The notes: generated by a model not told the origin, from the letters alone. Positions 8,245-57,659 are shown, counted from the first letter of the stretch. The stretch: DNA of 64,000 nucleotides from Penicillus capitatus (GCA_965649825.1 OZ287695.1:620001-684000), one strand, 5' to 3'. Made by a program: numbers and translations.

Positions 8245-8379
8245 CTTCTCCAACGAGAATGACGCTTAGATGCGGAAACAGTCAACCAGTCCCGAGTCAT
8301 CTGTTGTACCAAATCGATCTCGAATCATTTGCGTCCCGACAGAATCGCATCATAAGACGTAAGTTGTTAGACGTGATCG

Positions 8380-9060
8380 ACGATTTCGGACAGACCCAGA
8401 ACTGTCGAAATTGTTCGGCGTTTAATGGCGATTAAACCAGAGATTCGAGTTTCAATCTCCAGCATCTCAGATGGAGAAGATCAGCTACTGGCTGTTTGTC
8501 TAAGGGCAAGTGACAGAATCCCAGATTCACTGTCGAAGTGTAAGCTCATCGATCGGGGTGTGTTGTCCTTTCATGCACATTTGTTTTCGTAAAGCGGACC
8601 GCTCTTAAACGAATGCACTTAATATAATGTAATGTCGAGATACATCCTTTCGCAAAGATGTCTCGAGGCCGAGATGCAGCAAACAATCAGCACTAAGCCT
8701 CACCGAATGGGAGTTCAGATTTCACTGTGAAATAAACAGCGAAGACATTTCTGAACTCTGGACGTACCACTCAGTCATTTCCATAACAAAGGTGAATAAT
8801 GTGATCTCCATGCGAAATGTTACTCAATGACAGAAAGAGTGAGAATGTTGCTATTGTCATCATTAAACAGACGATGTTAAAATGCAACAGATGTTTCAGT
8901 TTCGGTTCTAAGATTTTCTCCAACAATGATGCGCAGCGATTGATAACAATCAGCATTCGATAACAGACACAATGGTCGTAATATCCTCTCACTTCTTGCA
9001 TACAGGAAATCATCAATCGTTTGGTCTCCCTTTCACCCGATCTGAATTTATGATAAGAAC
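8380..9060 (+). pseudogene. Degenerate conserved block downstream of type-2 protease-ANK genes, probably a dead convergent gene
   Basis: Homologous to about 20330-21000, 41290-42130 and 45900-46560; recurring frame KSENV.I.I.KQTM.KC.RCF.FG.K; many indels. Confidence 0.45.
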
Positions 9061-9159: not shown

Positions 9160-11774
9160 TCACGGACGTAGGAGTCGCTCGAGGGAGTTTCGTGTCGATT
9201 TAGAACACTGTGACAAACTTTTAAGACAGATAACGTCGAAAGGCGTTTCTTTATCGTCGTTGATCACCATCTTCAAGGCTCTGGCATCCAGCAGAATCTG
9301 CAACACGACATTAAATCTCGATATGGTACCACTGACTCGCCTTTGCTGTCTTTGGATGACCACACTCTGCAGCAGCATGAAGCGGAGTATCTCCATGTTT
9401 ATCAACAACGTTGACGTTAGCGTCTTCTTCGAGCAACAACTGTAGTAGGCAAGGTGAAGAAGAAGACAGAAGACAATCAGAAGAATGCACCTTTACGATT
9501 TCAAGCTTCCCATCTAACGCAGCGAGATGAAGTGGTGTCTGTTCAGCAGCGTTCACGTGGTTAACGTCCGCCCCGTGCTTTATCAGGATCTGTTGAACCA
9601 CAGGTTTGTCATCAAGGTAATGAAGTGCGTACACAGCTGACCTTGACCACTTCGGTATCTGCGAATCGCGCTGCCAGATTCAGAGGAGTCCATCCTCGCT
9701 TGTTGACCACATCGACCTTCCCTCCGTGCTCAAGAAGGATCTGATGAACAGAGGTCTCTGCCAATGCAGCGACGAGGTGAAGGCGTGACTGACCTTGACC
9801 ATTTCAGCGTCTGCGTTAATCGCTGCAACGTGCAGAGGAGATTCTCCATCGTCTCTGGCCTTGTTAACCTTCGCTCCGTGCTTGATGAGTACCTATCTGG
9901 GCACTTGCTGGAAGCACGGAAGCACATCATGACTCGCCTGCGCAGTTTTTGAGTATCCGAAGAATGCAGCCATGTACAGAGGCGTCTGTCCATCGTCGTC
10001 GGCGACGTTCACTTCAGCATCGTGATCCAGGAGAATCTACGAACAAACGTCAAAGCGGACGCCCGAGATCGCGTTGTGAATTCACCTTGGCCACTTTTGC
10101 GTGACCCTTCTTCGCTGCCAGATGCAAAGGAGTTTCTCTGTCATCGTTGAGTTTGTCGACGACTGCGCCATACTCCAGAAGAACCTGACATTGGAAGCAC
10201 AAGGATTCAAAGAACTGAGACGAAGTGTCTTGTTGACTCTGTCATCCAGAGTGGTCTCAGAGAAACACATTACCTCCGTGCATTTTGACGCATTGTGAAA
10301 CGCTGACCAGTGTAACAATGTGAAACGCTTTTCTCTCTCATATCTTGGCATTCGAGCGGACTTGCGGAAAGAATCTGGATCCAGTCCCTCCAGCAGAGCA
10401 GCTTCCAACTTCAAAGCATTATCATCTTTTATGGAGTCATACGTCTCCTACAAAACTATCTGTGTGTTCGTTCGATCGTCATTGTCGATGCTACAGCAAA
10501 GAGTTCTTTCTGCGATAGCTCCGTCAGCCGCTCACGTTCCTCTTTAATCTTCTGTTGTTTTGATTGTTTCTTTCTCGTTTTCTTGTCTGTCGGAAGTTCT
10601 GTTCCTTCTTTTCCAATAGGTGAAGGTGACTCGACTGAGTGTTGCTGATCTTTCTCCTGTTCTAGAAGATTAGACACGAGGAATCAAATGCGGAACATTG
10701 TTTACCTTCGGTTTTTCGCCGATTGTTTCCTGAATCCAATCCCAGAATGCACCGATACCTGTGAAGACGCTCGGTGTTGGTTCGGTGCAATTTGAGGGCC
10801 CCATGGATGTCACGCCAACAAACAGATCGAGTTTTGCATTCCCAGTTGCTATACTGCCTCCAAATTGATTAGGAATCAACAGCGGATTGCCAGAATCACC
10901 TTCACAGAGGAACCTTGGCAGGAAGGTGGTGTTGACAAGTATTATACCTCGGCATACGCTCTCATTTGAGAATCCAGCACAAATCATGTGTTTTTGAATG
11001 ACGTCTGATAGAAAATCCTTGCACTGGTGGTGACTCACATAAACAAGTGTCTCTGCTATCTGTAAAGCATTCGGATACTCTCCAGTCTTGTCTTCTCCCC
11101 AGCCAAGTGAGGTGAAAAATTTGCCAGAAGGGAACTCTCCTCCCTGAGTGTCTATCGACGGCAGTGTATGATTCGCTTCTTTATTCAGTTTGACGACGGC
11201 GATGTCATATCCGTCTTCCACGTTACCTGTCCAAGATTCAGGCCAGTGGCTTTCCTGTGCGCTGAACACCTACAAGTTTTTATCTCGCAAGAAGGTGCAT
11301 AGCGACGAAGTAGTTACTTCGTCGGGGTCATCTGCGTCAGGCTTGTGAATGCCACAACGAACAAGCGGATTTCTGCCAAGGCTTGCCCGACTGTTGGGGT
11401 CGACACAGTGTGCAACTGTGACGACCCATTGTGGTCGAATGAGTGTTCCACCGCAGCGGTGAAATCCATCCTCTCGCGCCGAAAGACTGCAAACGTAGGG
11501 GAACCGTCCCTCTGGTGCCTCTTTACCCTGCGGGAAGACGAACAGTAAAAGTCGAACGCGTACGTGGCTGCATAGACTCACGATGATATTAAAAGTAAAT
11601 CGCGACGTAGAGGCCATTGATTCTAAACCGTTAACACATAGACACGCGTCGGAAATGCCGACAAAGGGTTGTAGTACCTCTTGTTTCTCGACATTCTGAT
11701 ATTTGGAAGTGCAGGAAAAGCAGCAGAGAGATATGGAAGCAAAGACGGCGACGCGAAATGGAGAAAAGCTTCAT
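9160..11774 (-). CDS. Signal peptide + S1A serine protease + ankyrin repeats, type 2, copy B (7 ANK exons + terminal exon)
   Basis: [28 protein letters not shown]; TVAHC, GYDIAVV, ESVCRG|DSGNP; Lys/Glu-rich linker; [20 protein letters not shown]; 99-nt ANK exons; ends ..[15 protein letters not shown]. Confidence 0.85.
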
Positions 11775-11998: not shown

Positions 11999-13287
11999 TT
12001 ACGGTGCCGCTAGGTTAGATCCATTCGAGTGCATCGACATGCTGTGGCGGATAATGGATGTGAAATCGACAACATTCTGCAGTCCGTCCATGACACCTAG
12101 CACCACACTAATGCCTCCGCGGCGCACTGAATGGAGAGAACCTGTGAAGTAGAGCATGTCCTGAGTAGCAATGATGAACTCTGGACCCACGGCACTGATG
12201 ATGTGCTGTCCACGTCTGCCGGACAGTACAGTGCCTTCATTCAAATGGTGCTTCGAGCTCATACCTGACGGATGCGAGAAAGAGTCCATTCAGACCACGC
12301 AGACCAGCTTCGTCGACCGTGCAGCCAACTGCACGCGAATGATCCGTGACCTCCAGTCCAACGAGGAAGGAACTCTGGGCATCTAGAAGAAGAGGAAGCT
12401 GGAAGGAATGCATTGCAGCGTCTGCCCAACATTGCACTTGGTTTTGAGAGAGGCCAGGGAGAAGCAGCGGAGAAAAGAGATACATGTAGATGAGTCCGCC
12501 GACGGCGACGGGGACGCCAAACTTGCCGATGTCGAAGAAGCTCTGCTTGGGTATCTGCTCACCCTCTTCGGCACTTGCCGCCATGTCGTCAATCAGACCT
12601 AGAGAGCACACAAACAAACGCGTTTCCTCTCGCGCCCGTCTCCTGTGCACCTGCCACGACCAGATTGGTCGACGTGCCGATCAGAGTGCAGGTTCCGCCG
12701 AGCATCGATGCGAAACTCAGTGGGATGTACAGCTGCAGGGAAGGCGTCTGGACAGTGTTTATCATCGAGATGGTGTGCCTACCTGTCCTGCAGGGAGATG
12801 GGATCTCTGACACCACACTTTGACGATGGGTAACATGATGGCCACTACTGGTGTGTTGTTCATGAAGGCGGAGAGAATGGTCACGGGAAGCATCATGCGC
12901 ATCATGGCCGACCCCGTATTCGTCGGATTTCCTAAGACGACTTGGAAGAGAGCGTCCAGACATCCCGTTTCTGAGATGCCCATCGCCACAACGAACAGCA
13001 CTGGTGGAAAACGTCCATTCCCGATGCTTCGCCAACCGTCGGCTCACCTGCGACAGTCAGAGGTGCTTCGTTGGAGAATCCAGCCAGTCTTTCGTCCACG
13101 CTGATGATGCGCGTCACCACGAGCACAGAGAGAACACCTATTGGCGAGTATGCTATTCATCTGCTTGAAGAAGGGGTGGCTGATCTAAGAAGAAGAAATC
13201 TGCTCCCGTCCATTTTTTGAAGGGGATGATTATCGCCACGACGATGCATAGAATCGCAACGGCAGAATCCAAAACAAACTCTGCCAT
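11999..13287 (-). pseudogene. 5' half of an SLC13/SLT-type Na+/sulfate cotransporter with the first TrkA-C domain
   Basis: GFSNEAPLTVA; ILSAFMNNTPVVAIMLP; SFASMLGGTCTLIGTSTNLVVAG; GCTVDEAGLRGLNGLFLASVR..DMLYFTG. First intron donor appears to be AT rather than GT; the frame stops at 11999 and the C-terminal half is absent. Confidence 0.75.
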
Positions 13288-14895: not shown

Positions 14896-15856
14896 ATGTC
14901 TTGCCGACGTGTTCTGACGATTCTTGCGCTCTCTGCGCTCTTTGGCGTCTCGTTTTGTCAGAGATCGAGCACCCATGCCAGAAAAACCCTTCCCGAAGAA
15001 CCACAACCGCAGAGATCGAACGACAGTTCACGGACACCCGATGGCGTTGACTTACCAAACCAAGACGCGAACAATACGAGTCTATACAGGTCAGTGTCAA
15101 GAAAGAATGCCGTTGTCTCTGTGACAACGAGACGTTTTGCAGGGAGCAGTCGACGAGCGAGTTTGAGCAGGAACGCTGCTACTGTTGTCTCCCAGATGAC
15201 GATTCCTGTTGCCAGATCTGGATCTGTCATCGGATGGGACCCGAACTCGGCTCTACGGATTGTCGACAAAGGATCTTAAGTCCTGGTGATAACTTTAACG
15301 ATTCCAGTGACGTGACCACGTGCACATGCTCGAATGTATCCTCGGAGGAGGACTATTGCGACGAATAGTACTGTCATGGGTTCACCGAGGACAGAGAGCT
15401 AAAGCGATCGGACACTGCTGCCTGGAACGGAACACGAGTGGTGTGCCTTGTCTCCGCTGGAAAACGATACAACCCCTTTGGAATAATGATGTCGAATCGA
15501 TCTGTCGGTGTACAAAAAAGGAAGACGGTTTCTGCAAACTGTCGAGCTGCACGGAAGAGAGACGCGTTCAGTGTTGCGAAGACGAGGGTCACCGCAAGTG
15601 GTATGTGTGGTTGATCGGAGGAGTCGGTATGCTGGTGCTTTCCTCTGTGAGCTCCTCGCTACTGTGCGATGGACAACCCCTGGGAATGTACTACGCTGCT
15701 GTCGGTTGGGTGCTGGGAGTGATGTGGTTCATTAGCGTTACCATTTGGGGAGTCGGACGTGTGTGGCTGTATTTCTTAATAGCATCAGTGGTCGCAACGT
15801 TTTTCCCCCAAGCCTTTGTGGTAATTTGTCTTTGCGTGTTTCGTATAGTGGAATAA
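14896..15856 (+). pseudogene. Cys-rich 3-TM family member with frameshifts and a stop
   Basis: Signal peptide MSCRRVLTILALSALFGVSFC; KECRCLCDNETFC..RCYCC..CCQIWIC..TCTC..YCDE*YC (TAG at a conserved W); ICRC..FC; 3-TM tail. Confidence 0.75.
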
Positions 15857-16811
15857 AAGAACGGCCTTTAGACAAAAGAAAAGAGACTCCTCATTCCGAC
15901 ACAGAACATGACGCACATAATCAAGTGATCGCGGTCAAGTATAAATCGTGGAAGTGTGGGGGTTTACATGATTTGTTGTCTTGTCGTGGGGGTTAAAGCA
16001 GATCCAGAATTTTAAAAAATGGAAAAGTCTTATTATCAGAAGCAATGGCCAAGAGTGGAACGGTGCTTCTTCGTCATTTCCACCAATCTATTTCTGCCTC
16101 GTTGTTGAATCCGTCTTGCATTCGATTGAACACTTGGGGGAAGAACTAATTGCCGTTCTGTTACAAGTTTGTCTGAAGAAAGGAACAATCTGCGGGGAAA
16201 CTCCATTCTTGTATAGTACACCACCGCCGTGTTACTGGGCACTGTTCTCACTCGCACTCTTACTGTCTACACAGATGTGTGATAACAGACTCTGGCAGAG
16301 TTCGAGAAAACGAATCGATTAAGGCACAGATCAGTTGGAAGACAGAGAATCTCACTTGTTTGACAGATCTGGTCCGATTGATCGTCGCACCTTTATCTAA
16401 CACCAACCTGGAGCATATATGGACAGTACTCAATGATGGTGGGGTAAGTCGTACGGCAAGATTCGTTTTTTGTGCATCTGAGTTAATAGAGTGGCCACAG
16501 TGCCTTCGTCGGACGAACTCGCTCTTTTTAACGAACTGTCGGGCGACGATTCGGGTATGCAAGAACGGCAGCCGTTGCTGATTCGATGAACATTGTACGG
16601 TAAGTATTTGTTGTTTCCAAATCCTCTGTCCGAACGGTAGCAGCCACCCGTCGTCAGGAAATGGATAAGAACCTCGCTTCTGTTGTTTCGGTTGTCACAC
16701 TCGTAGCTCGACTTCTCCTCTTTTCATTTGCGATTCCGCGAAAGCCGAAGGAGAACTGAGGGGGCGGATTTCACAATACAGCTTTTCCGGAGATTCACTC
16801 TTTCTCTCAAA

Positions 16812-17786
16812 ATGCGCCTTCGACGCGTTCGGGAAGTGCTGACACTCTTGGTGTTCTGCCGCCTCGCGTGCTGTCAAGGGACACAGGAGTTCGACTTCGA
16901 ATCTGATATCGCCACTTGGCCGCAGCTGAAGCGGCAAGCGGGTTATCGAACAGAGTCAGGGAAATACTTGGGCGGTCTGTACAAGAAAGCACGCTTCGAA
17001 GAACGGGAGTTCTATCTCTGCCTCCGAGATAACGAAAGCTTTTGCATGGAGTGGTTGATACAACAAGCAAGCGGCGGCGAATCGAAGATGGGTGGATGCA
17101 TATGTCGAGAGGAAACCGGTCCCTACTGCCCAATGTGGACTTGCAGTCATACGGAAACGGAAGTCCACAGGTCCAAGGGTAATGATGACGATGATGACTA
17201 CCACACAGTCGTCCATGGAAAAATAACAAGATGCTTCTGCAGCAAGACATCACCCAACGAGAACTACTGTCACGCATGGCACTGCGTAGAAACGGGCACG
17301 GACGGGACTTTAGAAAACGAGCATCACCGCTGTCTGGAAGAGGACGAGAGCGGCGAGTTCTGCTTCCGCTGGAAAGGAGACATCACTTCGGAAAAGGAAG
17401 TCGAATCATCTGTCTGCCAGTGTACGGACAGAAAAGATGGCCATTGTGAAACATGGGAGTGTGTCGAGCGTGGACTCGTTCGATGTTCGAAGCATTGCCC
17501 TTCGTGGTGCAATGTATGGATTGGTGTTTTTGTCGCTGGAGGACTCGGACTGTTCTTCCTTGCCCTCGGTGGCGTGATCAGTGGACTCGTACCCTTCTTC
17601 GACCTACATCCTATTTTTTATGTCTGCTATCCGGCTGGCCTTTTGCTTGGATTGCCGTGGATTGCATTTGTTCTCATCTGGGGAGGTGTTGATGCGCCGA
17701 TGTATGTTCTTCCAGTGTGGGGACTCGTGATATTGCTCCCCTGTCTGTCTTTCGTGCTCTTTTGTTGTATCGGTCGTTGCCGTTGA
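16812..17786 (+). CDS. Intronless Cys-rich ectodomain + 3-TM membrane protein, unknown family (324 aa)
   Basis: Long ORF, first ATG at 16812; signal peptide; five C-x(5-9)-C-x2-W units; three hydrophobic helices; clear paralogue at 27270-28250. Confidence 0.9.
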   Translation: MRLRRVREVLTLLVFCRLACCQGTQEFDFESDIATWPQLKRQAGYRTESGKYLGGLYKKARFEEREFYLCLRDNESFCMEWLIQQASGGESKMGGCICREETGPYCPMWTCSHTETEVHRSKGNDDDDDYHTVVHGKITRCFCSKTSPNENYCHAWHCVETGTDGTLENEHHRCLEEDESGEFCFRWKGDITSEKEVESSVCQCTDRKDGHCETWECVERGLVRCSKHCPSWCNVWIGVFVAGGLGLFFLALGGVISGLVPFFDLHPIFYVCYPAGLLLGLPWIAFVLIWGGVDAPMYVLPVWGLVILLPCLSFVLFCCIGRCR

Positions 17787-18479
17787 CCTTCTCTTGCCCT
17801 TCCTTGAAATTCAACCAGACAGAGAGATGATAAAAGGCAGATCGCCATTTCCAGTTAGGCTGGAGGAAATGTGTCTGGCGTGGTGTTGATCTAGATTTGG
17901 TTCTCTGCTTCAGCATGCTGTTGATGCAGGCTTACATGTTCGAGAATTGTCAGTCACTGCAAACGCAGTGCAACAACTAATTGAGTTCAGAAACATCCAC
18001 GCCTCGTTCGATTCTTGTCCCAATAAAAAATTCATCAATTCGTCCTAACAGGCAAAGTGTATGATAAATGACGATTTGATATTCAAAACGGGTCTACTGT
18101 TATGCTGGGACCGTTGCATCTGCAAGTTCCGGCGGGTCGCACGTTCCCGAAAAATGGTCCTTACGTATACCGCCGCTACTGTATCTTTTTCGAAAGAACT
18201 GTTCTCACACTTTGTTTTGGCTGTAAAAGCCAGTAGTGCTGTTTACGCACAAACCTACTTAGTACTTTTATTGTCAGCGAAGGTTGACGTTTCTGCGTTT
18301 CTCGAGACGCCTTAACGACGTGTTCTGAATTCTTGTACTCTCTGCACTCGTCGGAGTAACGTCTTGTCGGAGGTCGGTTGTCTGTACAGGGAGGACCCTT
18401 TCCAGGAGAAAGGCGCAGCACAAACCAAAGGAGTCGCCACTAAGCGTTGACAACAAACCAATCCATCCAGAGAACATTT

Positions 18480-18870
18480 TGACTCCGTGTTGGTCGGTGT
18501 CCAGAATAGAACACCGTTGCCTCGTCGTCAACAACGCGATTCGCACGGAATGGTCGACAGGAGAATTAGATCGAGGACGTTGCTTCTGTTGCCATCAAAC
18601 GGTCTCCTCTGGACTCGCCACCAGAAGGAAATCGAACTCGGCATCGTTTATCATACCGTGCTCACAGCACTAGGACATCTGGAAACACGACTAGATGCAG
18701 CTGTTTCAATATATCCTCGAAGAAGGGCTGTTGCGAAGAGTGGTACTGTACCGAGCCCGCCGTGGACGGAGATATGAAGTACGCGTACTACAGATGCCGG
18801 GAAGCAAACAAGAACGGTGGCATTTGCTCTGTAAGCCAAGCACCACTTTGATGTATGTGTGTCCGGAAGC
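18480..18870 (+). pseudogene. Fragment of a Cys-rich family member
   Basis: RCLVVNNAIRTEW..GRCFCC and TRCSCFNISSKKGCCEEWYCTE..YYRCRE in different frames; no TM part. Confidence 0.65.
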
Positions 18871-19189
18871 CAACAAAGATTTCACGCCAAGTTCGCCGCG
18901 CGAGTCGTAGGAAAGCACATCGCCCTTCTGCTGTGGGCGGAAACGATCGAGAATCAGTCATGCATCGACTGCACCACCAAGGACAGCAACATTCAATCGA
19001 AAGTTGAATGTCAAAAGGGCCAGTTTCATCGCGAAGGAAATGTCCGTGTACCCGTCTTCTCAGCTTGTACCTAGTACCTACTTACCTGCCTTATGTCTTA
19101 TGACTCGTGTCATTTAAGTTGCATATACGCCTTGAGTTTTTATTCTGTATCCTAGAAAGTCGCTGGCCACTCCGATTCTGCAAGTGCAG

Positions 19190-19900
19190 TAGAGTCAAAA
19201 GTGCAGGAGCAAAAGCGCCGAAAAGTCGAGGCGAGGTCGACGGTTAGACGAAGAATGAAGAGTTTTTGTCCGGGTGGTGACCCTATCGTCGGCCCCCGAA
19301 ATTAGCGCGACGTTGTCATTTCCCCGCCGGAACCCATCCAACTCGGCGCGGCTCGCCAGACACAACCGGGTCAACTCTGATGGGACGTCCCTCCTCTGTG
19401 TCCGGCGCAGGAATCGATACCCCGCGGTCGTACTTCTCGAACTGGTCCAGCTGCACCATCCGCTTCGGGTCGATCCCCGCAGTCGAGAAGGCGCTGATCG
19501 CAATATACTCCCGCCGTATACGCGTCCGTAGCTCCGCAGAGGTCCCGTCAAGGTTGGCGACCTCAAAGTCGAGACGACTTCGCCGACGTCTTCCGATTCT
19601 CGACTCAAGACGGCGACGGCCTCGACGACCAGATACGTATCCGCGAATCTTTGCCTTTGGACTCACTTTTCGGATTCCTCGTCCATCGACGTTCGACGGA
19701 GGACAAGAACGAAATCCTATCTCCTGTTGTGGGAGTCGGCACTGCCACATTTTCTTCTCCACTCCATTACAAGTGTTCGTTTCGTTGTGAAAATAACTTC
19801 CTTGTGGAATCGTGGTTCAAGAGCATGCACAGTTATGCGACGTTGTTCGGAATGCATTCGATCAGCTGCAGACTTTGGAGAGTCATGTGTCAAAAGACTT
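19190..19900 (-). repeat. Dispersed repeat / degenerate ORF of unknown identity, copy 1
   Basis: Highly similar in inverted orientation to 39910-41150; ..RRRRSRLDFEVANLDGTSAELRTRIRREYIAISAFST..; weaker similarity to 28400-28900. Confidence 0.75.
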
Positions 19901-20329
19901 GAAAAACGCCACAAAGAGTTACACCCCGTTTCTAAGCACAATCCTTTTCCACTTTGTGTTATTTTTACTCAAGTTGTACACAAAAATGGATGTCCTGCAT
20001 AGAAGAGCGGATGCAATGGACAACAAACTACCACCAAAGATCATGTCTCACAAAAGAAAGAATATCACTCTACAAGGAGGGCAGATACCGAAAAAGTGGA
20101 ACTAGAGACATTAGACGATTACATCTAGTTCCGAAAATGTTACCGGCCATCTTACGCATGGTGCTGCGTCTCATTTTTTGAAGGAAACGCAGCAATTCTA
20201 GAAAAAAGTTGTTTGTTTCGCAAACTGACTCAGCAGGCGGAGGGGAGTTGGGTGCATAATCGTAAGACGGAATTAGCGGCGCATTTTACTGCATGGTGTG
20301 AGAGCGACCTCGAGCTTTTTCACCGAGAA

Positions 20330-21000
20330 TGTCTGACGGACACGTCGTTATTCGTGAGACGGTCTTGTAACTGTTCGAATTGTTTGCCGTTTTATGGCGA
20401 TCGACCTAGAGTCACGGAGTTCAGTCTCCAGCACTTCAGGCGCAGAACACTATACTGACTGTTTGACTGAAAGGCAAATGTCACGATCCCAGATACGCTT
20501 TCAGAGTGCCTTCAAAAAGGGCCATTGATCAGGATGCGTGTCCTTTCAACTACACTTGTTTTTCGATGAGGAAACCGCGTTTGTAACGAATGTGCTTAGT
20601 ATAATGCAGTGTCGAGATGTGTAGGGATTGAAATGCAGCTTAAAATGATCACCAAGTCTAACCAAATGAAAGGTCAGATTTTACAGTGAAAGGAACAATG
20701 AAAACATTCATTCACACACAAGCCAATCGTTCACTCATTCCCACAACGAGGGAGAATAACGTGACCTCGCGAGGAAATGTGACTGGATGACAGAAAGTGT
20801 AAGAATGTCGTTATTGTCATCAATAAACAGACGATGTGGAAATACGACAGGTGTTCCAGTTTCGGTCCTAAGACTTCTCAGACAATGAATGCACAATATT
20901 AGTCAAGAATCAATATTCGATATGTAACAAACGGTCCTAATGACCGCGCCCTCTAGCATCCAAGAGAGCGCAACCTTCTGGTTCTTCGTTCATGTGATCT
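20330..21000 (+). pseudogene. Second copy of the degenerate convergent block
   Basis: Homologous to 8380-9060 (..RKCKNVVIVINKQTMWKYDRCSSFGPK). Confidence 0.45.
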
Positions 21001-21116
21001 GGATTCTTATCACGTATTGGTCACAGAAGACGAAGGCACTGTAATAATAAAAGCAGCAAAGGTTAGACTCTTCTTGGAGAATATTTATTAATAGAGGGCT
21101 TTGTCGGACGCCCCGC

Positions 21117-23765
21117 TCACACACGCAGGAGTCTCTCGAGGGAGTTTCGTGTTAAATCAGAACATCCAGAAGTCCTTCCTTCACAGATAACGTCAAAAGG
21201 TGTGTCTCCCTGCGCGTCGGTTAATGTCTTCCAGGCTTCGGCGTCCAGCAAAATCTGTAGTACGCCATTAGACTCTGAGATGGTGCTTCTGACGCACCTT
21301 TGTTATCTCCAGATGACCATCTAGGTAACCATACCGTGCTGCAAGGTGAAGTGGTGTTTGACCAAGCATATCAACAACATTGACACCAGCATCTTCTTCA
21401 ATCAGCAACTGTACTAAGTAAGGTGAAAATAGGACAGACGACCATGGGAAGAATGCACCTTTACAACCTCAGGCGTCCCAAATGCCGCGGCAATGTGAAG
21501 TGGCGTCCATCCACTCTTGTCGACAATATCGAGTTTCACACCATGCCCAATGAGAATCTGGCGAATGACCGTTTCTGTCAGCAAGGGGACGAAGTGAATA
21601 GGTAACTGACCTTGACCACTTTGGCATCTCCGGATATTACAGCGATATGCAAAGGAGTCCATCCGTTTTCGTTCGCGATACTGACCTTCGCTTTATGCTC
21701 GATGAGGATCTGGCGACTGACCGCTCTGCCAATGAGGGGAAGAAGTGAATGGATAACTGACCTCGACCACTTTGGCGTCTCCGGATAACACAGCGAAATA
21801 CAAAGGAGTCAGTCCATTGTCATTAACCTTGTTGACCTTCGCCCCGTGATCAACGAGTGCCTATCAAGGAACTTGTCGAGTAGTCCGAGAGCACATCATA
21901 ACTCGCCTGCACAGTTTCTGAGTCTTTGCCGCGCGCAGCCATGTGCAATGATGTGTCTCCAGTTAAATTGGCGGCGTTCACTTTAGCGTCGTGCTCCAAA
22001 AGAATCTGCGAGCAATCTTCTGTGTAGACAGCTGGGATCATATTCGGATTTACCTTCGCCACTTTTGTGTGTCCAGTCTCCGCTGCTACGTGCAGAGGAG
22101 TCACTCTGAAATCCGTGGGCGTGTCCACGCTTGCACCATATCCCAGAAGAACCTAAAATTGCAGGCACAAGGATTCAACGGACAGAGACTTTGCGTCTGG
22201 GCTCCGGCATGCAGAGTGGACTCAAAGAAGCACATCACCTCAGTGCATTCTGGCGCATTGTGATACGCTGACCAGTGCAACAACGTGAATCGCTGCTGTG
22301 CTCGATACCCTTCTACTCGAAATGTATACATGCGGTGAGAATCTGGATCCAATCCCTCCAGAAGAGCAGCTTCCAACTTCAAGGCATTGTCATTCTTTAT
22401 GAAGCGATACGCTTTCTACAGAACCGTCTGTGCACTCCAAGCGATCTTCTGCATTGTTACTGCAACCTTAATCAGTTCTTTCTCCGAAAGTTCTGTCAGT
22501 CGTTTGCGTTCCTCTTTGATCTTCCGCTTTTCTGCTCGTTCTTTTTTCGTTTTCTTGTGTGTCGGACTCTCTGTCTGTGGAGATCGTGTGCCATCTTCTC
22601 CATTCGCCAAAGGTGACTTGCGTGACTGTGATCGATCTTTCTCCTGTTCTGGCGATCAGACACGAAGAAGCAAATGCGGAATGCAGTTTACCTTTTGATC
22701 TTCGCCGATTGTTTCTTGAATCCAATCCCAGAACGCACCGATACTTGTATAGATGGTCGGTGATTGATCGGTACAGTCTTCGGAGCCCGTGGACGTTACG
22801 CCGACAACCAGGTCAAATTCTGGATTCCCGGCTGCAATGCTGCTTCCAGATCTGTCAGGGATCAACAGTGGACCACCCGAATCACCTTCAACAGAGGAGA
22901 CTTGGCAGAATGTGGCGCTGTCGAGTGTTTAACCCTTGCATGTGTTCTCGTTTGCGAATCCAGCACAGATCGAGTGTTTTTTGACGGCGTCTCCGAGGAA
23001 TTCTTTTTTACAGTAGTGATTCGTCACATACACCAGGTTGGCTGCGATCTGTAAAGAATTTGGATTTCTTCCAGTCTCGTTCAGTCCCCAACCCAATGCG
23101 GCGAACAGTTTCCCTGAGCGAAATTTACCCCCCTGAGTGTCCAGTGAAGGCAGCGCAAAATTCGCTTCTTTATTCAGTTTGACGACGGCGATATCATAAC
23201 CATCCTTCACGTTACCGGTCCAAGATTCGGGCCAGTGACTTTCCTGTCCGCTGAACACCTAGCAGCTTCCACCTCGGAAGAAAGCGAATAGACGTGAACA
23301 GGTGATTACTTTGTTGGTATTGTTTGCGTCGAGTTTGTGAATACCGCATCGGACAATCGGATTTCTGCCGAGTGTGTTCGAAGATGGGTCGACGCAGTGT
23401 GCTGCTGTGACCACCCATTGTGGTCGAATGAGGAATCCGCCACAGCGATGGAGTTTATCTTCCCGTCTGGATAGACTACAAACGTAAGGGAACCGTCCCT
23501 CTGGTGCTTCTTCGCCCTGTGACAAGAAAGGTCGTCGAAACCTGAATTTGTGTGCGTGCAATTGCAAACTCACGATGATGAAGGGAGCGAGTCGCGGCTT
23601 AGAGGCCAATGCTCCTGAACCGTTGGAAATATGCACGCGTCGGAAATGCTAACCTGGAGAGGTATTACCTCCTTTTTCTCGGCATGTTGCAATGTGGAAG
23701 TGCAAGAGAAGCAGAAGAGACATGTGACAGCCGAGACGACAACGCGGAACGTTGGAAAGATTCAT
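21117..23765 (-). CDS. Signal peptide + S1A protease + ankyrin repeats, type 2, copy C (7 ANK exons + terminal exon)
   Basis: MNLSNVPRCRLGCHMSLLLLLHFHIATC; TAAHC, GYDIAVV, ENTCKG|DSGGP; in-frame linker and ANK exons; ends ..[15 protein letters not shown]. Confidence 0.85.
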
Positions 23766-23929
23766 GCTCGAGAATGTGTTCTGCGGCAGTGGCGTGCGCT
23801 CAAGTAACGCAGTTAATTGATCCATTAATGTTCTCAGTTCTCAGTGACTGTCAGACGTTGCGAGGGGAAAAACCGTTCGTGTCCTCTGTCGTGTTCGTCT
23901 AGGCTTCTCATGGACTGAGTTGGCATGCA

Positions 23930-24040
23930 TGACAGGGTCAAAGCTTCTCCGCAATGCATATGTATACAGCTTATCCAAGTTGCCGCTCGACCAAGTCAAG
24001 CTGGTGCATCGACACGGGCAACTGTGTGAACGACGATCTG
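23930..24040 (-). other. Remnant homologous to the broken 3' end of the SLT gene; similar remnants near 45200-45280 and 49660-49740
   Basis: Matches 11930-12060 (SMSMH / VSMHQ / SMSMQ / SMSMG frames) immediately upstream of each type-2 gene. Confidence 0.6.
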
Positions 24041-24265
24041 CGCTTCACCTCGAATCTCCGTTCTGTGTGCATTCATTTTTTGAGAGTGCTTTAAGGCAAG
24101 GGGAATGCCGACGGTTAATCCTCTGTGTTCCATCCAGCTTTCTGCCAAGACCATACAAGCGTCTCATGCCGTTCAGAACAAATCAGGCTCATTGCGACGG
24201 CTCCACAGGCCGATGCGAGTGCTCTTGCGATCCTATCAGACACACATCGGTTCACGCTCCCAGAT

Positions 24266-24800
24266 TCAAATTGTGCTCACTCTCGAGGGACGGCAGACAG
24301 CAATCCACAGAGGCAGCAGCAGAGCAAAGAACCAGAGCGCTCCGACGATGGGCAGCGCACGAAATCCGCCCCAAACGAACACTCCGATCATCATGAAAAG
24401 CGCTGGAACGCTGAGAGGCAGAGCCAAGTGTGGTTCTTCCATCAGCAGACTGAAGGTCGAGGCAGAGATGATGATGAACACAGCGACGCCGCCACCCAAG
24501 ACAGCAACCCAGTAATTGCACCACCAACCGGAATGCGCCTCGCAACGAACCATTCCTCTCATCTCACAAAACCAACAGTCGAAGAGTGTCTCGTTGGTCG
24601 ACTGGCATCGGCAGACAACGGACTTGATCTTCTTTTCCGACGAGATCTGACCCTTCACCACTCGCAGCAATCCTCCATGTTGGTACTGTGGCATTGGAAA
24701 TGCTGCTCTTCGAAGTCGCCATAATAGCCGAGCTTCACACAGAACCACTCCGAACGGTACTCTGTGTTTTCGGTCTTGCTACACCGTCGCGGTTTCCTTT
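24266..24800 (-). pseudogene. 3' half of a Cys-rich 3-TM gene
   Basis: CSKTENTEYRSEWFC..FQC..CCEW, frameshift, KGQISSEKKIKSVVCRC..VRCEAHSGWWCNYWVAVLGGG + 3 TM; 5' half replaced by ANK sequence. Confidence 0.75.
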
Positions 24801-24829
24801 ATATCCGCACAGCTTCATTGGGGTTCTCG

Positions 24830-25630
24830 CATAACCAGTTGTCGATGGCGATCGATTCGATCGACCTACGTCGCCAAGAACAGCGTTCTCTGCCCATTGG
24901 CATCTGCGACATCGACATCAGCGCTGGTGTCGAGCAATACCTGCCAGGAGTTAGGCAAGGGAAACAAAATGGTCTCCAGATGTCCCTGTGTCGATGCCAG
25001 CATCAACAGGGTCACGACCAGCTGATGACATCGTATCCATGCATGTTGAGAAGCTGAGTATTATCTACTTCAGCAGGAGATGTGTGACGTAGATCAGAGG
25101 CACACCTCAACAATGTCGTCGTATCCACTTTTCGATCTTTCATGCAATACCGTCCGGCCGTTGCTCTTGAAGATTCCGGCGTCCACGGCACTGTCGGCGG
25201 AATCTGAATGCAAATTGCTGGACAGCTGTCTGACTGTTCGATTATAGCTAACACACTTGCAGGAACTCTCTGCCACTGCTTGGTACGGATCGATACAAGT
25301 GAGTCTCTCCATCCTCGTTGACAAAGTTGAGCTTGGCCATCCGAGAAACAAAAAAAGGCACGACAGACAGAGGACAAACCGACCAACTCTTAACCTTCTA
25401 ACCACTCTTTCTTCATTGCTTCAAGCCGGCATGCGCGGACGCAAGATAAAGGCATTTAACATGGCGAGAGACTCCAGCGACTTCATTGAGTGTGATATCG
25501 TGCACATGTGGCCTTCGGTTTTTCCTTCCGTTTCGACAGATCGTTTATCCTGTTCCTCCTCATCGAGACACTTGATGCGTTTGTTTGTAAAGGAAAGGAG
25601 AACATCGCCTAAGTAAGAAAACTGGTTCAC
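24830..25630 (-). pseudogene. Degenerate ankyrin-repeat gene
   Basis: Broken ANK exons: RTVLHERSKSGYDDIVE; TLLMLASTQGHLETI; VLLDTSADVDVADANGQRTLFLAT*; paralogue at 57660-58447. Confidence 0.7.
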
Positions 25631-25899
25631 GCTCTGTCAGCTCTTTCGAGGAAGATTCGGAGTGTTCTGGAACAGCCATTCTTCTAAAGGCAGATGATCA
25701 GTAAGATGCCTGTCTACCCACTATCGTATCTCTTGCCACCGTCGATTCGCTCGAGTCAAAAACGTACGTCTCTGTATACGGTTTTCGAAGTACGATTCGA
25801 GTTTCTGCAGTTGGACGGCTGAGACAGAAGGTTCACGTTCTGCTGGTCTATTATAACCAAAAGACGAACAAGCGAGCGTCGAAAGCTCTCCGGAAGACA

Positions 25900-26655
25900 A
25901 TGAAGATTCCTGTTTCTATCCTTCTTTTTATTTTAGCCGGAGATTTCTCCGTCCTCTGTACTCGCCGTAAGGCATCGACCGGCGCCGCTACACGGCCAGA
26001 CACGCATTCTCTGCTTGGTCAGGTCATAATGACTGGAACACCCTCGTTCGACGCGCGAACCCTTCCCAGTTGACGACGACGCACCATTCAGATTCTCCCG
26101 TGTTCAACCGAAAGGTAACCAAGAGGCTGCCCGCACACTCTCTGCTTACCTATGCTGGCGAGTGTAGAGCACCACGAGCGAAGAGAGAAGGGTACAGTCG
26201 TCCGTGACGGAGTCGGTCGAGTACGGAGACCTCACGGCCGATGCACGCATCCTGGTGTACCCGCGTACATCGTCTGTATCGATATGCGCCCTGCTTTCCA
26301 GGAAGCGGTCTCCGCCATCGAGCGAGACGACGCAGCGAGCCTCGCTGCGTTGATTCGTGCAGGTCTGGATGTCAATACGACGCACTCAGAGCCGGAAGGG
26401 TTTAACTACTCTCCCGACGAGATTCCATCGCTGCTGCACTGAGCGTTGGGCTTCGAGGCACTCGAATGCGTCAAGGCACGTCTATGCCCTTATCGTTTCT
26501 CCCAACTCAAAAACGGTCTCTGGATTGAAGGTTTTCGCGAGAGAAGGAGCGGACGTCGATTCCACTACTCTGTGTTCGTTCACACCGCTTCACGATTCCG
26601 TCCTGATCGATTCGAAGGAGATAGCACAGGTTCGTCCCTGGAACATCTCTTTACT
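25900..26655 (+). pseudogene. Signal peptide + ankyrin gene, 3'-truncated
   Basis: MKIPVSILLFILAGDFSVLC; EAVSAIERDDAASLAALIRAGLDVN..SLLH* (TGA 26440-26442); homology to the other copies ends near 26655. Confidence 0.8.
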
Positions 26656-27269
26656 TGTTACTGAACGAATCCGCGATCGTTATGTTGTTGCATATCGTAA
26701 AACGGATGTCCTCTGGTCCTGATCTGGCAGATGGTCAACTCAACATCTTCAGTCGACTTCATGTCGTCCTTCGAGTAGAACCAGACGCGAAAAAGAAGAC
26801 TGATGCGTCGAATGTGCATCGAGGTTGAATTCGAATGGCAGAGGGATTCTTGATTCCTTTGAAGCAAGAATCTGTTCGATCTATGGACAGAAGCTAGACA
26901 TATGTACATATCGACAGATGCACGTCTGAAAATGGAGTGACCAATGAGAATGTCATCTCTCGTAGTGCAGTCAAACAGGTCTCATGACGAAATTGTCTGA
27001 AAGCAAACGATGTGACGTCTACACTAAATGGCCGAAATCGTCTCTGGCTGATCAATGCGTTTGTTCGCGATAATCGGCTACACATGAACGCAAAATGAGG
27101 TCGTTACAGCACGGAAGTCGGTTCCTTTGTCTTACGAATATCTTTTGATGAGCCGTTTCTTAGGCATAAGACCAATGTCTCGACATCTTTATAAGCAACA
27201 GCATGTTACCGCCATGCTTATCATAACAACAGAACAAAAAGAATAGTACACAACGACAGCTGCCAATCG

Positions 27270-28250
27270 TCATTTCGTCGGAGGCGATGACGGTATGAAA
27301 CATCGTTTCAGTATGAGAAAGAAGAGAGGAAGGAGGATAGCGATCCCCCACACAGGAACAACATATGGCCATGCACGTTCACCTCCCCAGATAACAACAG
27401 CAGCAATCCACGGCAATCCAAACAAAAGACCACACAGATAGCCGCAGACAGATAAAGTCTTGTACTCGCCAAAGAAGAGAGCAAATCCACCAATCAAGCC
27501 ACCGACAGTAAGGAAGAACAGTCCGATTCCCCCAGCGACAAAAACACCAATCCAGAAATGGCACCACGCACCGGAATGCTTCGAGCATCGAACGAGTCCA
27601 CGCTCAACACATCGCCACACCTCACAGTAACGATCTCCTCTGTCCATACACTGACAGACGGATGATTCGACTTCCTTGTCCGAAGTGATGTCTCCTTTCC
27701 AGCGAAAGCAGAACTCGCCGCTCTCGTCCTCTTCCAGACAGCGGTACTCCTCATACTCCACTGCCCCGTCTGTGCCTGTCTCGACACAGCTCCACACCTC
27801 ACAGTGCGTTTCGTTCGAGGATGGCTTGTCGCAGACGCACGTTGTCACTTCGCCGTGGATGGTGTCCTCGCAATCTCCATTGCAGTGGCTGTCGAATCCA
27901 ATTTCTATTTGACTGCACGTCCACATTGGACAGTATGTGCCTGTCGTCTCTCGGCAAAAACACCTTCCTTGTTCAGCTTCTCCGCCGCCCGCTTCTCGCG
28001 TCAACCACTCTGTGCAAAATGCCTCGTTGTCTTGGAGGCAGCGATAGAATTCGCGTTCTTCGTCTCTGACGTCCTTGTAGAGACCTCCTCGGTATCTCCC
28101 CGACTCGGTTCGGTAACCCGTCTGTCGTTTCAACCGCGGCCAGCTGGAAATGTCCGACTCGTATTCGAACTGCGCTCTGCCTTGATGTGACAAGGCATTG
28201 TACATAACAATCAGCAGCAGCGCCTGCAAAGTTCGTCGACGTCGCATCAT
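27270..28250 (-). CDS. Intronless Cys-rich ectodomain + 3-TM membrane protein (326 aa)
   Basis: Long ORF, first ATG at 28250; aligns end to end with 16812-17786, with the five C..C-x2-W units and the TM motifs conserved. Confidence 0.9.
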   Translation of the reverse strand: MMRRRRTLQALLLIVMYNALSHQGRAQFEYESDISSWPRLKRQTGYRTESGRYRGGLYKDVRDEEREFYRCLQDNEAFCTEWLTREAGGGEAEQGRCFCRETTGTYCPMWTCSQIEIGFDSHCNGDCEDTIHGEVTTCVCDKPSSNETHCEVWSCVETGTDGAVEYEEYRCLEEDESGEFCFRWKGDITSDKEVESSVCQCMDRGDRYCEVWRCVERGLVRCSKHSGAWCHFWIGVFVAGGIGLFFLTVGGLIGGFALFFGEYKTLSVCGYLCGLLFGLPWIAAVVIWGGERAWPYVVPVWGIAILLPLFFLILKRCFIPSSPPTK

Positions 28251-28900: not shown

Positions 28901-30130
28901 CGATATCCGTGCACACCACTTCGGATTTGACGTTTCCGACTAGTCATTGACGTCGTCTAAGGAGTCTCATTGTTTTCAGGGATCTCACAATGAGCATGAT
29001 CGTTAGACCTTAGAAATTGAAAACACACTGTGTCCTGACTTAACCACTCAGTACTTCAAAAACATGAAGTCTTTCTACCATCCGGGATTTGAACGAAAAT
29101 CCGAGATCGAGAACATTCGGACATCTCAGAACATACCGTGTGAATTACACCAGCAGTCCTCATGAATACATCAACAATGCCTTTTGATCCATTCTGTGCC
29201 GATCTAATGCCACAAACAGAATAGATGTATGTGTACACGGCACCAGACACCGCTGTCTGCCATGGACACCTCCATCCAGCCTCGCACAGTTCATTCTGCT
29301 GAGCAAACTTGCTGATTGGTTTCAACAAACCTGCTATCGCTTCAAGGAATTAGCGTTGAGGAAAATAGCGACAAACTGCTCGAGCTTCAGAGGTACACAT
29401 ACACAATTCTCGTCGATTTACTGCCACAGAACTTGACGATCTCAATTATGCAGCGCATTGTTCGGAATGACTGATGTCTCCGAATCTATACTGCCTTCGC
29501 ACTTTTATCAATCAAGAGCGCAGGATGGCAGAATTCATTAACCGAGAATCTCTCCCGTCACGTGCTTTACTTCGTTCATCGTTCTGTCGGCTTTTTTGAC
29601 GAACGTGACTCTGATACCACGTCCTTTCGTGGTGAATGGAGTCGTGTAGGTATAAGTGACGGATGGCTGCTGTAGCTTCGACCGAACCGGCGACAAGAAA
29701 TAACTTCAGCCCTGCATCGAACCGTCACCCGAATTTAAGCGGAATTTTCGTCATCGCTTCACTTTGCAGCCGCTTGTCGCATTCGCAAATCTTGTCGCCG
29801 CCGTGGCCACATCCAGAACACTCGCGGTCGTCCCTGCTGTGCGACAGGTTCCAGGTATCATTGTCTCGTGTTTGCGCAGACGCGGGGCTTCTACCCGTCA
29901 TCTCTCCGATCCGGGCCGGACCGGTCCGTCGCGATATCAACAAGGCTTAGTACATCAGTCTTTAAACTCCTGCTCACTGGTTTGTTTTCCAGGCGAAGTG
30001 GTCACAAAAGCCTACGTATTTACTCGACATCACTTGACAGTCGTGCGACCAGTCGCAAATTGAAGCAAACGGTTGACGGCGTTCAAAGCGTCTTTCTTTT
30101 TGGTTTTCAATCTTGGCGCGGTTAGAAAGA

Positions 30131-31537
30131 ATGTTGGTATACATCGCAAGGCCGATGACGAAACCCTTCCTCATGTCTTGCTCTCCTGAAGACAAAGTTG
30201 GAGATATGAAAATAAAAGTGTTCGACACGGAGGGAATCCCTCCCCGTCAACAACGCTTTACTCATCGAAGCAGAACGCTCATGGACGACAGGAAACTAAA
30301 GGACTGCGGCATTCGAGACAGAGACTCTATATTCCTGGAGTTGCCGTCAAGGGCAGCAAAAACAATGAAGATATGCATAAAGACGATGGATGATAAAACC
30401 ATTCTTGTCTCTTGCTCTTCCGAAGACACGGTAAATGACATCAAAATGAAAGTGGAACACAAATTGGAGATCCGACACGATCTGCAATACTTTACTCATC
30501 GAAGCAGAACGCTCATGGACGACAGGAAACTAAAGCACTACGGCATTAAAGACAGAGACTTTATATTCCTGGAGCTCCTGCCAAGCGAGCTGGAAACAAT
30601 GAAGATATGCATAAAGACGATGGATAGCAAGACCATTCAAATCTTTTGCTCTCCCGAAGACACCGTTCGTAATATTAAAGCGAGAGTGTTCGACACAGAG
30701 AGAATCCCTCCGCGCCGACAACGCTTCACTAATCGAAGCAGAACGCTCATGGACGATAGAAAACTAAAGCACTACGGCATTAAAGACAGAGACTTTATAT
30801 TCCTGAAGCTCCTGCCAAGCGAGCTGGAAACAATGAACATATGCATAAGGACTTTGGATAATAAAACCTACTCTGTCTCTTTCTCTCATGAAGACACAGT
30901 TAACGACATCAAAATCGAAATGGAAAGGATTACGGGGATAGCACGCGAAAATCAACGGATTATTTTCGCTGGGAAAGGTCTTCTTACAGACGAAATGATC
31001 CTTAAGGACTCCGGCATATTTGACAACTGCACTTTGTCGCTGGTGACCCGATTACTCGGAGGAGGCGGGTTTTCCCCTTGCGTGGGATTCGACTTCGCCA
31101 GTATGAAAAGCGGCGGCAAGAAGAAGTTTTCCCAGGATGCGCCGCATTACAGAGCCATTGATTATGGATTCAATCTGGAGGGTCGATGCATGAATGAGAA
31201 GTGCGAAGCTTTCAAGCAATTGGCATGGAGCAGACTCGGATTCTCCCGCTCTCTTAATGAAGTTGATTCTCTCTTTGAAACGGCTGGCTTCAACATTGGC
31301 TTGCTGCTGCACAACACGCCATGTCCTCTCTGCAAAGAGTCAATGGACCCTAATTCTATTGTGTCTTGTGGATTCTATCGATGCAAGTATACCTTTGAAG
31401 GTTATCAGCAAGGAGAGAAGTCTGTCATCAAAGGAAGCGGCAAGGCTATTGACACAGATGGAATCGAGTACCATAACGGTGTCATGGACAGCAAGAGCTG
31501 GACGACGTTGATCATCGTCGTCAAAAAACTACTTTGA
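30131..31537 (+). CDS. Intronless protein with four tandem ubiquitin-like domains and a Cys-rich C-terminal domain (468 aa)
   Basis: UBL units start at 30131, 30365, 30599 and 30833 (234-nt period); UBL4 IIFAGK..TLSLVTRLLGG; tail GFNLEGRCMNEKC..TPCPLC..CGFYRC. Confidence 0.92.
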   Translation: MLVYIARPMTKPFLMSCSPEDKVGDMKIKVFDTEGIPPRQQRFTHRSRTLMDDRKLKDCGIRDRDSIFLELPSRAAKTMKICIKTMDDKTILVSCSSEDTVNDIKMKVEHKLEIRHDLQYFTHRSRTLMDDRKLKHYGIKDRDFIFLELLPSELETMKICIKTMDSKTIQIFCSPEDTVRNIKARVFDTERIPPRRQRFTNRSRTLMDDRKLKHYGIKDRDFIFLKLLPSELETMNICIRTLDNKTYSVSFSHEDTVNDIKIEMERITGIARENQRIIFAGKGLLTDEMILKDSGIFDNCTLSLVTRLLGGGGFSPCVGFDFASMKSGGKKKFSQDAPHYRAIDYGFNLEGRCMNEKCEAFKQLAWSRLGFSRSLNEVDSLFETAGFNIGLLLHNTPCPLCKESMDPNSIVSCGFYRCKYTFEGYQQGEKSVIKGSGKAIDTDGIEYHNGVMDSKSWTTLIIVVKKLL

Positions 31538-35012: not shown

Positions 35013-37627
<2,615 letters not shown>

Positions 37628-57640: not shown

Positions 57641-57659
57641 TTGTGGGTTCTCGCATGAC

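Follow-up and report, generated by a model that had tools for sequence, protein, structure and literature searches.

An unannotated family of Cys-rich, three-helix membrane proteins in a segmentally duplicated array of Penicillus capitatus

Membrane proteins whose signal peptide is followed by small, disulfide-stabilized modules in tandem are well known, the modules being EGF-like, TNFR, LDL-receptor class A (LDL-A) or thrombospondin type 1 (TSP1) repeats, each of which forms a separate bead. A different arrangement is seen in pentameric ligand-gated ion channels (pLGICs), where a sandwich ectodomain is followed by four transmembrane (TM) helices, M1-M4, while P2X and ASIC-ENaC channels have two TM helices, cytosolic termini and no signal peptide. 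Long antiparallel strands with short turns also make up the ten-stranded up-and-down barrels of nitrobindin (3wjf), the NanoLuc/FABP-like proteins and bacterial outer-membrane proteins. Here we analyze 64,000 nucleotides of DNA from Penicillus capitatus (GCA_965649825.1 OZ287695.1:620001-684000), referred to as the window, which carries intact and decayed genes for membrane proteins that recall several of these systems and match none of them. A preliminary description of positions 14896 to 28250 had proposed an unassigned family of Cys-rich, three-TM cell-surface proteins, taken to be new receptors or adhesins, under birth-and-death evolution. Our analysis indicates, on sequence evidence, that two of the copies are functional members of an old, unannotated family of eukaryotic membrane proteins.

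The two intact copies, B and E (Table 1), encode products that are 61% identical across 311 aa and share one layout: a predicted signal peptide and an N-terminal motif (N-motif) come first, then five repeat units and a stalk, and last three TM helices with a very short tail. The start codon of B (ATG at 16812) lies inside a longer open reading frame (ORF), 16728-17786 (+), in which all of the peptides quoted for the five units in the preliminary description are present; the interval given there begins at the ATG of a decayed copy, A (14896), and ends at that of E (28250). The product of B is 98% identical to database protein P0001, and that of E is 100% identical to P0002, the protein taken for modeling. 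Matches of both to the family hidden Markov model (HMM) cover positions 3-316. As drawn from 63-150 members, the family is defined by a signal peptide, the N-motif AGY..G.Y.GG, five C..C-x2-W hairpin units of two types arranged A-B-B-A-B, a stalk of the form C-x7-C, three TM segments and a (W)GG loop, and all of these defining motifs are visible in B and E.

Each ectodomain contains five hairpin units of ∼30 residues, in each of which one Trp and either two or four Cys are conserved. Units 1 and 4 (type A) follow the pattern C..C-x2-W, and units 2, 3 and 5 (type B) follow CxC..C-x2-W-x-C. When a 63-sequence alignment was cut into units and these were compared profile to profile, every pair proved homologous (hhalign probability 78-98%). 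The general pattern, C-x(5-9)-C-x2-W, occurs six times in P0002, once in each unit and once in the stalk (C222-x7-C230-x2-W233). In composition-preserving shuffles of the same protein, the mean number of occurrences is 0.24, and none of 20,000 shuffles reached five. Hence the Cys/Trp repeat singled out in the preliminary description is nonrandom, and it is seen in both B and E together with the stalk, the three TM helices and the very short tail listed there. The stalk is a sixth, degenerate unit, the second strand of which has turned into the start of TM1.

Among 63 divergent members, the most conserved columns are 20 Cys, 5 Trp, the AGY..G.Y.GG motif and the WGG loop at the outer end of TM2. 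TM1 is Gly-rich and has a conserved G-x-x-G-x-x-G face, and the WGG in which TM2 ends completes an (L)PW..GV.IWGG motif that is likewise conserved. Polar or charged residues conserved among family members were not seen in any of the TM helices. Ectodomains are acidic in most members (isoelectric point, pI, 4-5), with Glu alternating on the strands (E-x-E-x-Y-x-C), and basic in some, such as P0030 (pI 8.4). The predicted cytosolic tail is short, at 8-13 residues. Three hydrophobic segments are evident from hydropathy in all members checked, usually along with an N-terminal signal-like segment. Signal peptide and topology calls rest on hydropathy and an AlphaFold2 model; given cleavage of the signal peptide, the ectodomain and the WGG loop would lie outside, and the TM1-TM2 loop and the tail would be cytosolic.

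A first AlphaFold2 model of E, based on 21 close sequences, had a predicted local distance difference test score (pLDDT) of 68, and Foldseek returned noise only. The second, based on 63 diverse sequences, reached a pLDDT of 94.1 and a predicted template-modeling score (pTM) of 0.83. In this model, a signal helix and a short helix (37-43) precede ten long strands arranged as five hairpins (62-220), followed by TM helices at 232-259, 264-289 (kinked) and 291-318 and an 8-residue tail. Foldseek searches of the PDB with the confident model placed pLGICs at the top (E about 1e-3), the best match being GABA-A 9crs_D (E 7.9e-4, probability 0.66); GlyR, GluCl, ELIC and nAChR also match. The likeness is one of layout alone, a short N-terminal helix, ten outside strands and membrane helices following one another in the same order. 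Superposition gave TM-scores of 0.13-0.24, against a threshold of 0.5, with a root-mean-square deviation (rmsd) of about 20 Å, and homology to pentameric ligand-gated channels was rejected on these grounds. Neither Neur_chan_LBD nor Neur_chan_memb matches in Pfam. Moreover, the pLGIC ectodomain is a sandwich, whereas that of the family is a set of five homologous hairpins with predicted disulfide staples, and both hydropathy and the model give the family three TM helices rather than four.

Other comparisons led to the same end. P2X and ASIC-ENaC channels differ from the family in their two TM helices, cytosolic termini and missing signal peptide, the family having a signal-like segment and three TM segments, and no Pfam match links them. 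Ten-strand barrels appear among the weak Foldseek matches with TM-scores of at most 0.32 to 0.39 (at most 0.39 when normalized to the target), and they lack both disulfide staples and a C-terminal TM bundle. No structural neighbor of the confident model with a TM-score above 0.4 was found in the PDB by Foldseek, nor did the viral structures of BFVD yield a relative.

Sequence searches were likewise negative. Pfam gave nothing at E ≤ 1 for the window's family proteins, no family common to any two of 63 aligned members at E ≤ 0.1, and no common family for 16 distant members. In particular, neither the window proteins nor the 63 members match models for EGF-like or laminin-EGF modules (six Cys in ∼40 residues, paired 1-3, 2-4 and 5-6), Ldl_recept_a (six Cys and an acidic Ca2+ cage, D-x-S-D-E), TSP_1, or TNFR_c6, the TNFR/NGFR cysteine-rich domain. 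TSP1 has W-x-x-W layers and a C-S-x-T-C-G core, whereas the family unit has C-x2-W-x-C and a single Trp. In place of the separate beads of EGF-like, TNFR, LDL-A and TSP1 proteins, the family has long two-stranded Trp hairpins joined in a continuous ten-strand run, and its anchor, unlike that of those receptors, is a conserved three-helix bundle. A literature search for a described brown-algal Cys-rich three-TM family found nothing relevant.

Searching PDB sequences with a first profile (A1) gave nothing, and a later profile (A3) gave weak, TM-only matches to the seven-TM regions of GABA-B receptors and to transporters. Profile positions 222-357, corresponding to the stalk and three TM segments, matched residues 606-749 of 9jr0_A, a stretch that covers the final TM helices of subunit 1 of the GABA-B receptor, with E 4.5e-5. 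For other chains the E value is about 0.02, and the match recurs over several class C G protein-coupled receptor (GPCR) entries. We dropped kinship to class C GPCRs (GABA-B/CaSR) as compositional, since the posteriors are low, no motif is aligned and three TM helices would have to correspond to seven.

Neither Pfam nor PDB sequences thus contain a full-length match to a characterized family, and the earlier view that the repeat is not EGF, LDL-A, TSP1 or another named module agrees with the lack of a Pfam model, of a credible PDB sequence match and of a structural neighbor. As modeled, the fold matches nothing curated or solved within Pfam, the PDB and BFVD.

Homologs are nonetheless numerous. 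A word-indexed search found 12 clusters, none with a named protein, whereas the yield of an exhaustive profile search was 217 clusters (50% identity, E ≤ 1e-3), of which 110 reach E ≤ 1e-10 and 39 reach E ≤ 1e-30. Members include brown-algal proteins from Ectocarpus fasciculatus (CAM9858132.1 and CAM9719478.1, each an 'unnamed protein product') and Undaria pinnatifida (EP00904_P003204), a raphidophyte protein from Chattonella subsalsa (MMETSP0947 CAMPEP_0117758104), and transcriptome entries from the choanoflagellate Salpingoeca kvevrii (EP00050_P012059) and the foraminifer Bolivina argentea (EP01084_P238023), for both of which transcriptome contamination is possible. In each, the N-motif is followed by five C...C-x2-W hairpins, the stalk and a three-TM region with its (W)GG loop. 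Identity to the window proteins is 24-36%, and none is characterized. Further members lie on contigs resembling those of nucleocytoplasmic large DNA viruses (NCLDVs), described below. The profile search supplies the taxonomic range that the preliminary description had called for, and it qualifies the claim of a new family: the family is unannotated and has no Pfam model, but it is neither rare nor restricted to one lineage.

Among 141 near-full-length members, the five-unit layout is the norm. A distance (neighbor-joining) tree resolves three groups. One is that of the window, for which a minimum of five divergent subfamilies occur in the same assembly; the second is brown-algal, its members having longer tails than the window proteins; and the third, large and of choanoflagellate type, is marked by an additional Cys-rich module at the N-terminus. 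Introns interrupt the Ectocarpus gene, and the Undaria-type gene consists of one exon and lies in DNA with few genes. In C. subsalsa, protein P0169 (871 aa) carries two Laminin_G_3 (concanavalin A-like lectin) stretches C-terminal to the membrane region (Pfam E 1.3e-31); as Laminin_G_3 domains are normally extracellular, the helix count of this protein may differ. Homologs were also found on short contigs, possibly transcripts, and a scan of JGI metagenomes returned only three short contigs, all from one project. A dinoflagellate origin was considered and dropped, as no spliced-leader relic was detected in the window or in five short homolog contigs checked.

Three subfamilies are represented in the 64 kb, by two copies that are intact, by four pseudogenes and by a single deletion derivative (Table 1). 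The preliminary description had counted two intact and four decayed copies. Its intact copies stand; of the decayed ones, three (A, C and D) lie in positions 14896 to 28250 and the fourth (F) lies outside, and the derivative, here called the mini-ORF, is a fifth relative. An intact paralog of subfamily II (L009:14168-15169) and one of subfamily III are found elsewhere on the same contig.

Table 1. Positions of family copies and of trypsin-plus-ankyrin genes, counted from the first nucleotide of the window
Feature	Subfamily	State	Position	Strand	Basis or remarks
Mini-ORF	II-like	intact	2178-1726	-	150 aa; signal peptide and three TM segments, without Cys-rich ectodomain
Copy A	II	pseudogene	14896-15856	+	two frame changes, stop, lost Trp
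Copy B	I	intact	16812-17786	+	single-exon ORF, 324 aa plus stop; family HMM 349 bits
Copy C	II	pseudogene fragment	18320-18830	+	stop in signal peptide, frameshift between units 2 and 3
Copy D	III	pseudogene	24266-24849	-	in-frame stop, 1-bp deletion, Cys substitutions
Copy E	I	intact	28250-27270	-	single-exon ORF, 326 aa plus stop; family HMM 372 bits
Copy F	III	pseudogene	56996-57690	-	segmental duplicate of D, 93.6% identical; outside 14896-28250
Trypsin-plus-ankyrin genes (seven)			∼5967-7966, 9335-11632, 21283-23636, 35350-37381, 42430-44882, 46845-49297, 52144-54784	-	Pfam Trypsin and Ank, tblastn map

The lesions differ from copy to copy. In A, three reading frames are used in turn, by the signal peptide, by units 1-3, and by units 4-5 with the TM region; a TAG at 15366-15368 stands in place of the invariant Trp codon of unit 3, and unit 5 has Ser instead of its Trp. 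Copy C stops after unit 4, without a TM region, and is 61-63% identical to the intact L009 paralog in two frames (tblastn). Copy D has lost its N-terminal third and spans residues ∼109-316 of the intact paralog P0033, relative to which it shows a 13-residue gap; it also has a 1-bp deletion at CEW/WKG and substitutions at conserved Cys positions, and its TM region is still 92% identical to that of P0033. Copy F is split by a 338-bp insertion (57251-57588, relative to D) flanked by a ∼15-bp direct repeat, AAGTACTGTTCGGAA, which looks like a small transposable element with its target-site duplication, and it is cut off after the stalk, without a TM region, at the boundary of another duplication. 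We considered A and D as intron-containing genes and dropped the idea, because the stop in A replaces an invariant Trp codon, the 1-bp deletion in D is apparent against its duplicate F, and conserved Cys residues are substituted.

In the mini-ORF, a subfamily II-like signal peptide is joined by an acidic linker of ∼30 residues to a three-TM domain (IAIGGG..., LWPVAVIFWG...). Its TM region matches the family HMM at E 1.4e-5, and phmmer finds similarity both to the TM domains of family members and to the signal peptide of subfamily II. From its sequence, the mini-ORF would be either a deletion derivative that has not yet been broken or a functional short paralog.

The array arose from segmental duplication, with 68-96% identity between duplicates within the window. 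For the intact copies, ratios of nonsynonymous to synonymous substitution rates (dN/dS) are 0.23-0.38: B versus E gives 0.36, and E gives 0.27 against both its ortholog P0003 and a 90%-identical paralog. These values point to purifying, not diversifying, selection on the intact copies. The proposal of birth-and-death evolution is thereby borne out, as the window holds intact and decayed copies of three subfamilies along with segmental duplications, intact paralogs exist elsewhere, and the dN/dS values are low; judging from the sequences, copies at this locus arise through tandem and segmental duplication, and pseudogenization follows.

The structural description of the family is much firmer than any functional reading. 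As modeled, the AGY..G.Y.GG motif packs onto a rigid, mostly acidic ectodomain, and the Cys-x7-Cys stalk couples the five hairpins directly to the three-helix TM bundle, the N-terminus being predicted to lie outside after signal-peptide cleavage. Our tentative view of function, which may well be wrong, is that the proteins form a non-enzymatic cell-surface recognition or adhesion module. The disulfide-stapled hairpin array could then display its variable turns and acidic face to an extracellular partner, and signaling or anchoring would proceed through association of the TM bundle with itself or with partner membrane proteins, rather than through the tail. Consistent with a non-enzymatic role, Pfam scans of the window proteins and 63 members revealed no enzymatic or signaling domain. 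The retention of signal peptide and three TM segments alone in the mini-ORF suggests that the TM domain is important. Lineage-specific tandem expansion with pseudogenes also fits, this pattern being typical of surface recognition genes, and the label 'receptor or adhesin' used in the preliminary description is plausible in that it suits the architecture.

Several observations weigh against a recognition or adhesion module. The intact copies are under purifying rather than diversifying selection, which sets them apart from many families of recognition proteins. A conserved three-helix bundle is more than such a protein requires, and a TM bundle with conserved motifs is more than a simple anchor needs. 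The conserved bundle, together with so short a tail and a paralog lacking the ectodomain, would be just as compatible with a channel subunit or with an endomembrane role.

One such alternative is that the proteins are subunits of an oligomeric channel, in which the disulfide-stabilized β ectodomain gates a pore of Gly-rich TM1 helices, much as in Cys-loop, P2X or ASIC receptors. The position of pLGICs at the top of the Foldseek list, with the same order of N-helix, ten strands and TM helices, speaks for it, as do the G-x-x-G-x-x-G face of TM1, the WGG at the end of TM2 and the persistence of the TM domain without an ectodomain in the mini-ORF. Yet order of elements is all that agrees, given the TM-scores and rmsd reported above; the helices number three, not four or two, and carry no conserved polar or charged residue; and there is no Neur_chan match, the five-hairpin ectodomain being unlike the pLGIC sandwich. 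We therefore consider a channel unlikely.

It is also improbable, in our view, that the family serves in the secretory pathway or the cell wall, whether by binding cargo or polysaccharide or as a Ca2+-binding anchor for an anionic wall or matrix. A strongly acidic ectodomain with alternating Glu on its strands would suit that role, and so would the family's abundance in walled algae, the purifying selection and the lack of a cytosolic signaling part. However, some ectodomains are basic, as in P0030, and members occur in the transcriptomes of wall-less heterotrophs, the choanoflagellate and the foraminifer, subject to the possibility of contamination noted above.

A further alternative arises from a clade of eight members within the brown-algal group (the P0045 clade; 83-99% identity), which occurs on two independent contigs, L014 (ENA ERZ6863740, 12.4 kb) and L016 (ENA ERZ6864290, 88.8 kb). 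Both carry an NCLDV major capsid gene (Capsid_N 2.6e-57, Capsid_NCLDV 8e-45) with the family gene (8001-9059 and 10001-10978, respectively) two genes downstream, and the other neighbors, in dense, intronless order, include EsV_1_7_cys, Bro-N, HNH_3 and ankyrin genes. These contigs look like a phaeovirus-like giant virus or provirus with a copy of the family. P0180 (NCBI assembly GCA_020357715.1) joins the clade, which groups with cellular brown-algal members in the neighbor-joining tree, and both contigs come from the same sequencing project as the Undaria-type cellular copies.

Given these contigs, the family might be a host-virus interface protein, acting in membrane attachment or fusion of gametes or cells, a copy of which was captured by brown-algal giant viruses either as an entry factor or as a means of superinfection exclusion. 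The capsid gene two genes away on both contigs and the affinity of the viral-type clade to cellular copies from the same project are what one would expect. On the other hand, three IMG/VR scans with different queries found no viral relative, BFVD contains none, no fusion-loop or coiled-coil feature is visible, and the contigs may be integrated proviruses that hold a host gene with no role in the virion. We judge this explanation distinctly unlikely. The window itself offers it no help, as it contains no viral hallmark genes: its ORFs of at least 110 aa match only Trypsin, Ank, ubiquitin-like and CitMHS models. An NCLDV or provirus origin of the window was dropped for want of both hallmark genes and dense, intronless ORFs.

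We give little credence to a bolder synthesis, in which algae, heterotrophic protists and giant viruses would share a superfamily whose hairpin ectodomain is mechanically coupled to a Gly-rich bundle, forming an oligomeric gated pore or an attachment or fusion device that phaeovirus-like NCLDVs have borrowed. Were a pore or fusion function true, the family would be a new class of channel or fusogen. At the other extreme, the notion that there is no real family, only chance or repeat-derived ORFs or uniformly dead copies, draws on the broken state of most window copies and the highly repetitive region but is practically untenable in view of two intact full-length copies with dN/dS well below 1, 217 clusters with invariant Cys/Trp columns and a high-confidence model.

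A surface recognition or adhesion module thus remains our tentative choice, and part of what it describes is familiar, namely a disulfide-rich surface membrane family under birth and death; the repeat and the fold are new, and what sets the family apart is the fold, the obligatory TM bundle and the viral copy, not a new principle. Provided the model holds, the proteins make up a widespread but nameless membrane family, found in algae, other protists and some giant-virus-like DNA, with a repeat and fold matching nothing curated or solved. A name would allow hundreds of 'hypothetical' proteins to be annotated and would add a new Cys-rich repeat and a three-TM module to domain catalogs, and brown-algal biology, where Ectocarpus is a tractable model, would gain a candidate surface or virus-interface protein.

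As for the genomic setting, the window is part of a 613,634-bp contig (ENA assembly ERZ25074695). With sparse long ORFs and about 50% G+C, it looks like eukaryotic nuclear DNA; Rfam and tRNA scans of the window gave no match, rRNA and tRNA included. The family copies are interleaved with protease genes, as had been stated: seven trypsin-plus-ankyrin genes, all on the minus strand, lie among them, themselves duplicated at 68-91% identity. Trypsin and ankyrin genes accompany the Cys-rich family in a related genome as well (L001). In the product of each of the seven, a trypsin-like serine protease domain at the N-terminus is connected by a Lys/Glu-rich linker to ankyrin repeats at the C-terminus, an unusual pairing in that a normally secreted domain is fused to a cytosolic repeat. 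Several copies contain in-frame stops or frame changes, which could reflect short introns or decay.

One paralog has as neighbors a gene for a plastid-type, cyanobacterium-like lysyl-tRNA synthetase (LysRS), and a Tab2-like gene whose product lacks a signal-peptide-like N-terminus. The closest named relatives of the LysRS (about 60%) are from cyanobacteria, Chlorella and Hibiscus, and closer relatives exist at 71-90%. These neighbors point to a phototrophic eukaryote, possibly one with a primary plastid, as the Tab2-like N-terminus hints.

Three further elements of the window deserve mention. An ORF of 474 aa at 30113-31537 (+) encodes four divergent ubiquitin-like repeats (internal duplication at 79-81% DNA identity) followed by a Cys-rich C-terminal region, and is not a canonical polyubiquitin. 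An inverted dispersed repeat at 19153-19744 and 40538-41150 (89.6% identical), also present on another contig of the same assembly (L002 7500-7958), contains the shared ORF motif ...FEKYDRG.SIPAPDTEEG.PIRVDP.VSGEP..., which has no Pfam match, and may be a mobile element. Finally, ORF pieces at ∼12240-13056 (-), placed by ORF inspection, match the CitMHS citrate/anion transporter family (Pfam E 6.3e-7) and represent the only recognizable housekeeping-type gene inside the array.

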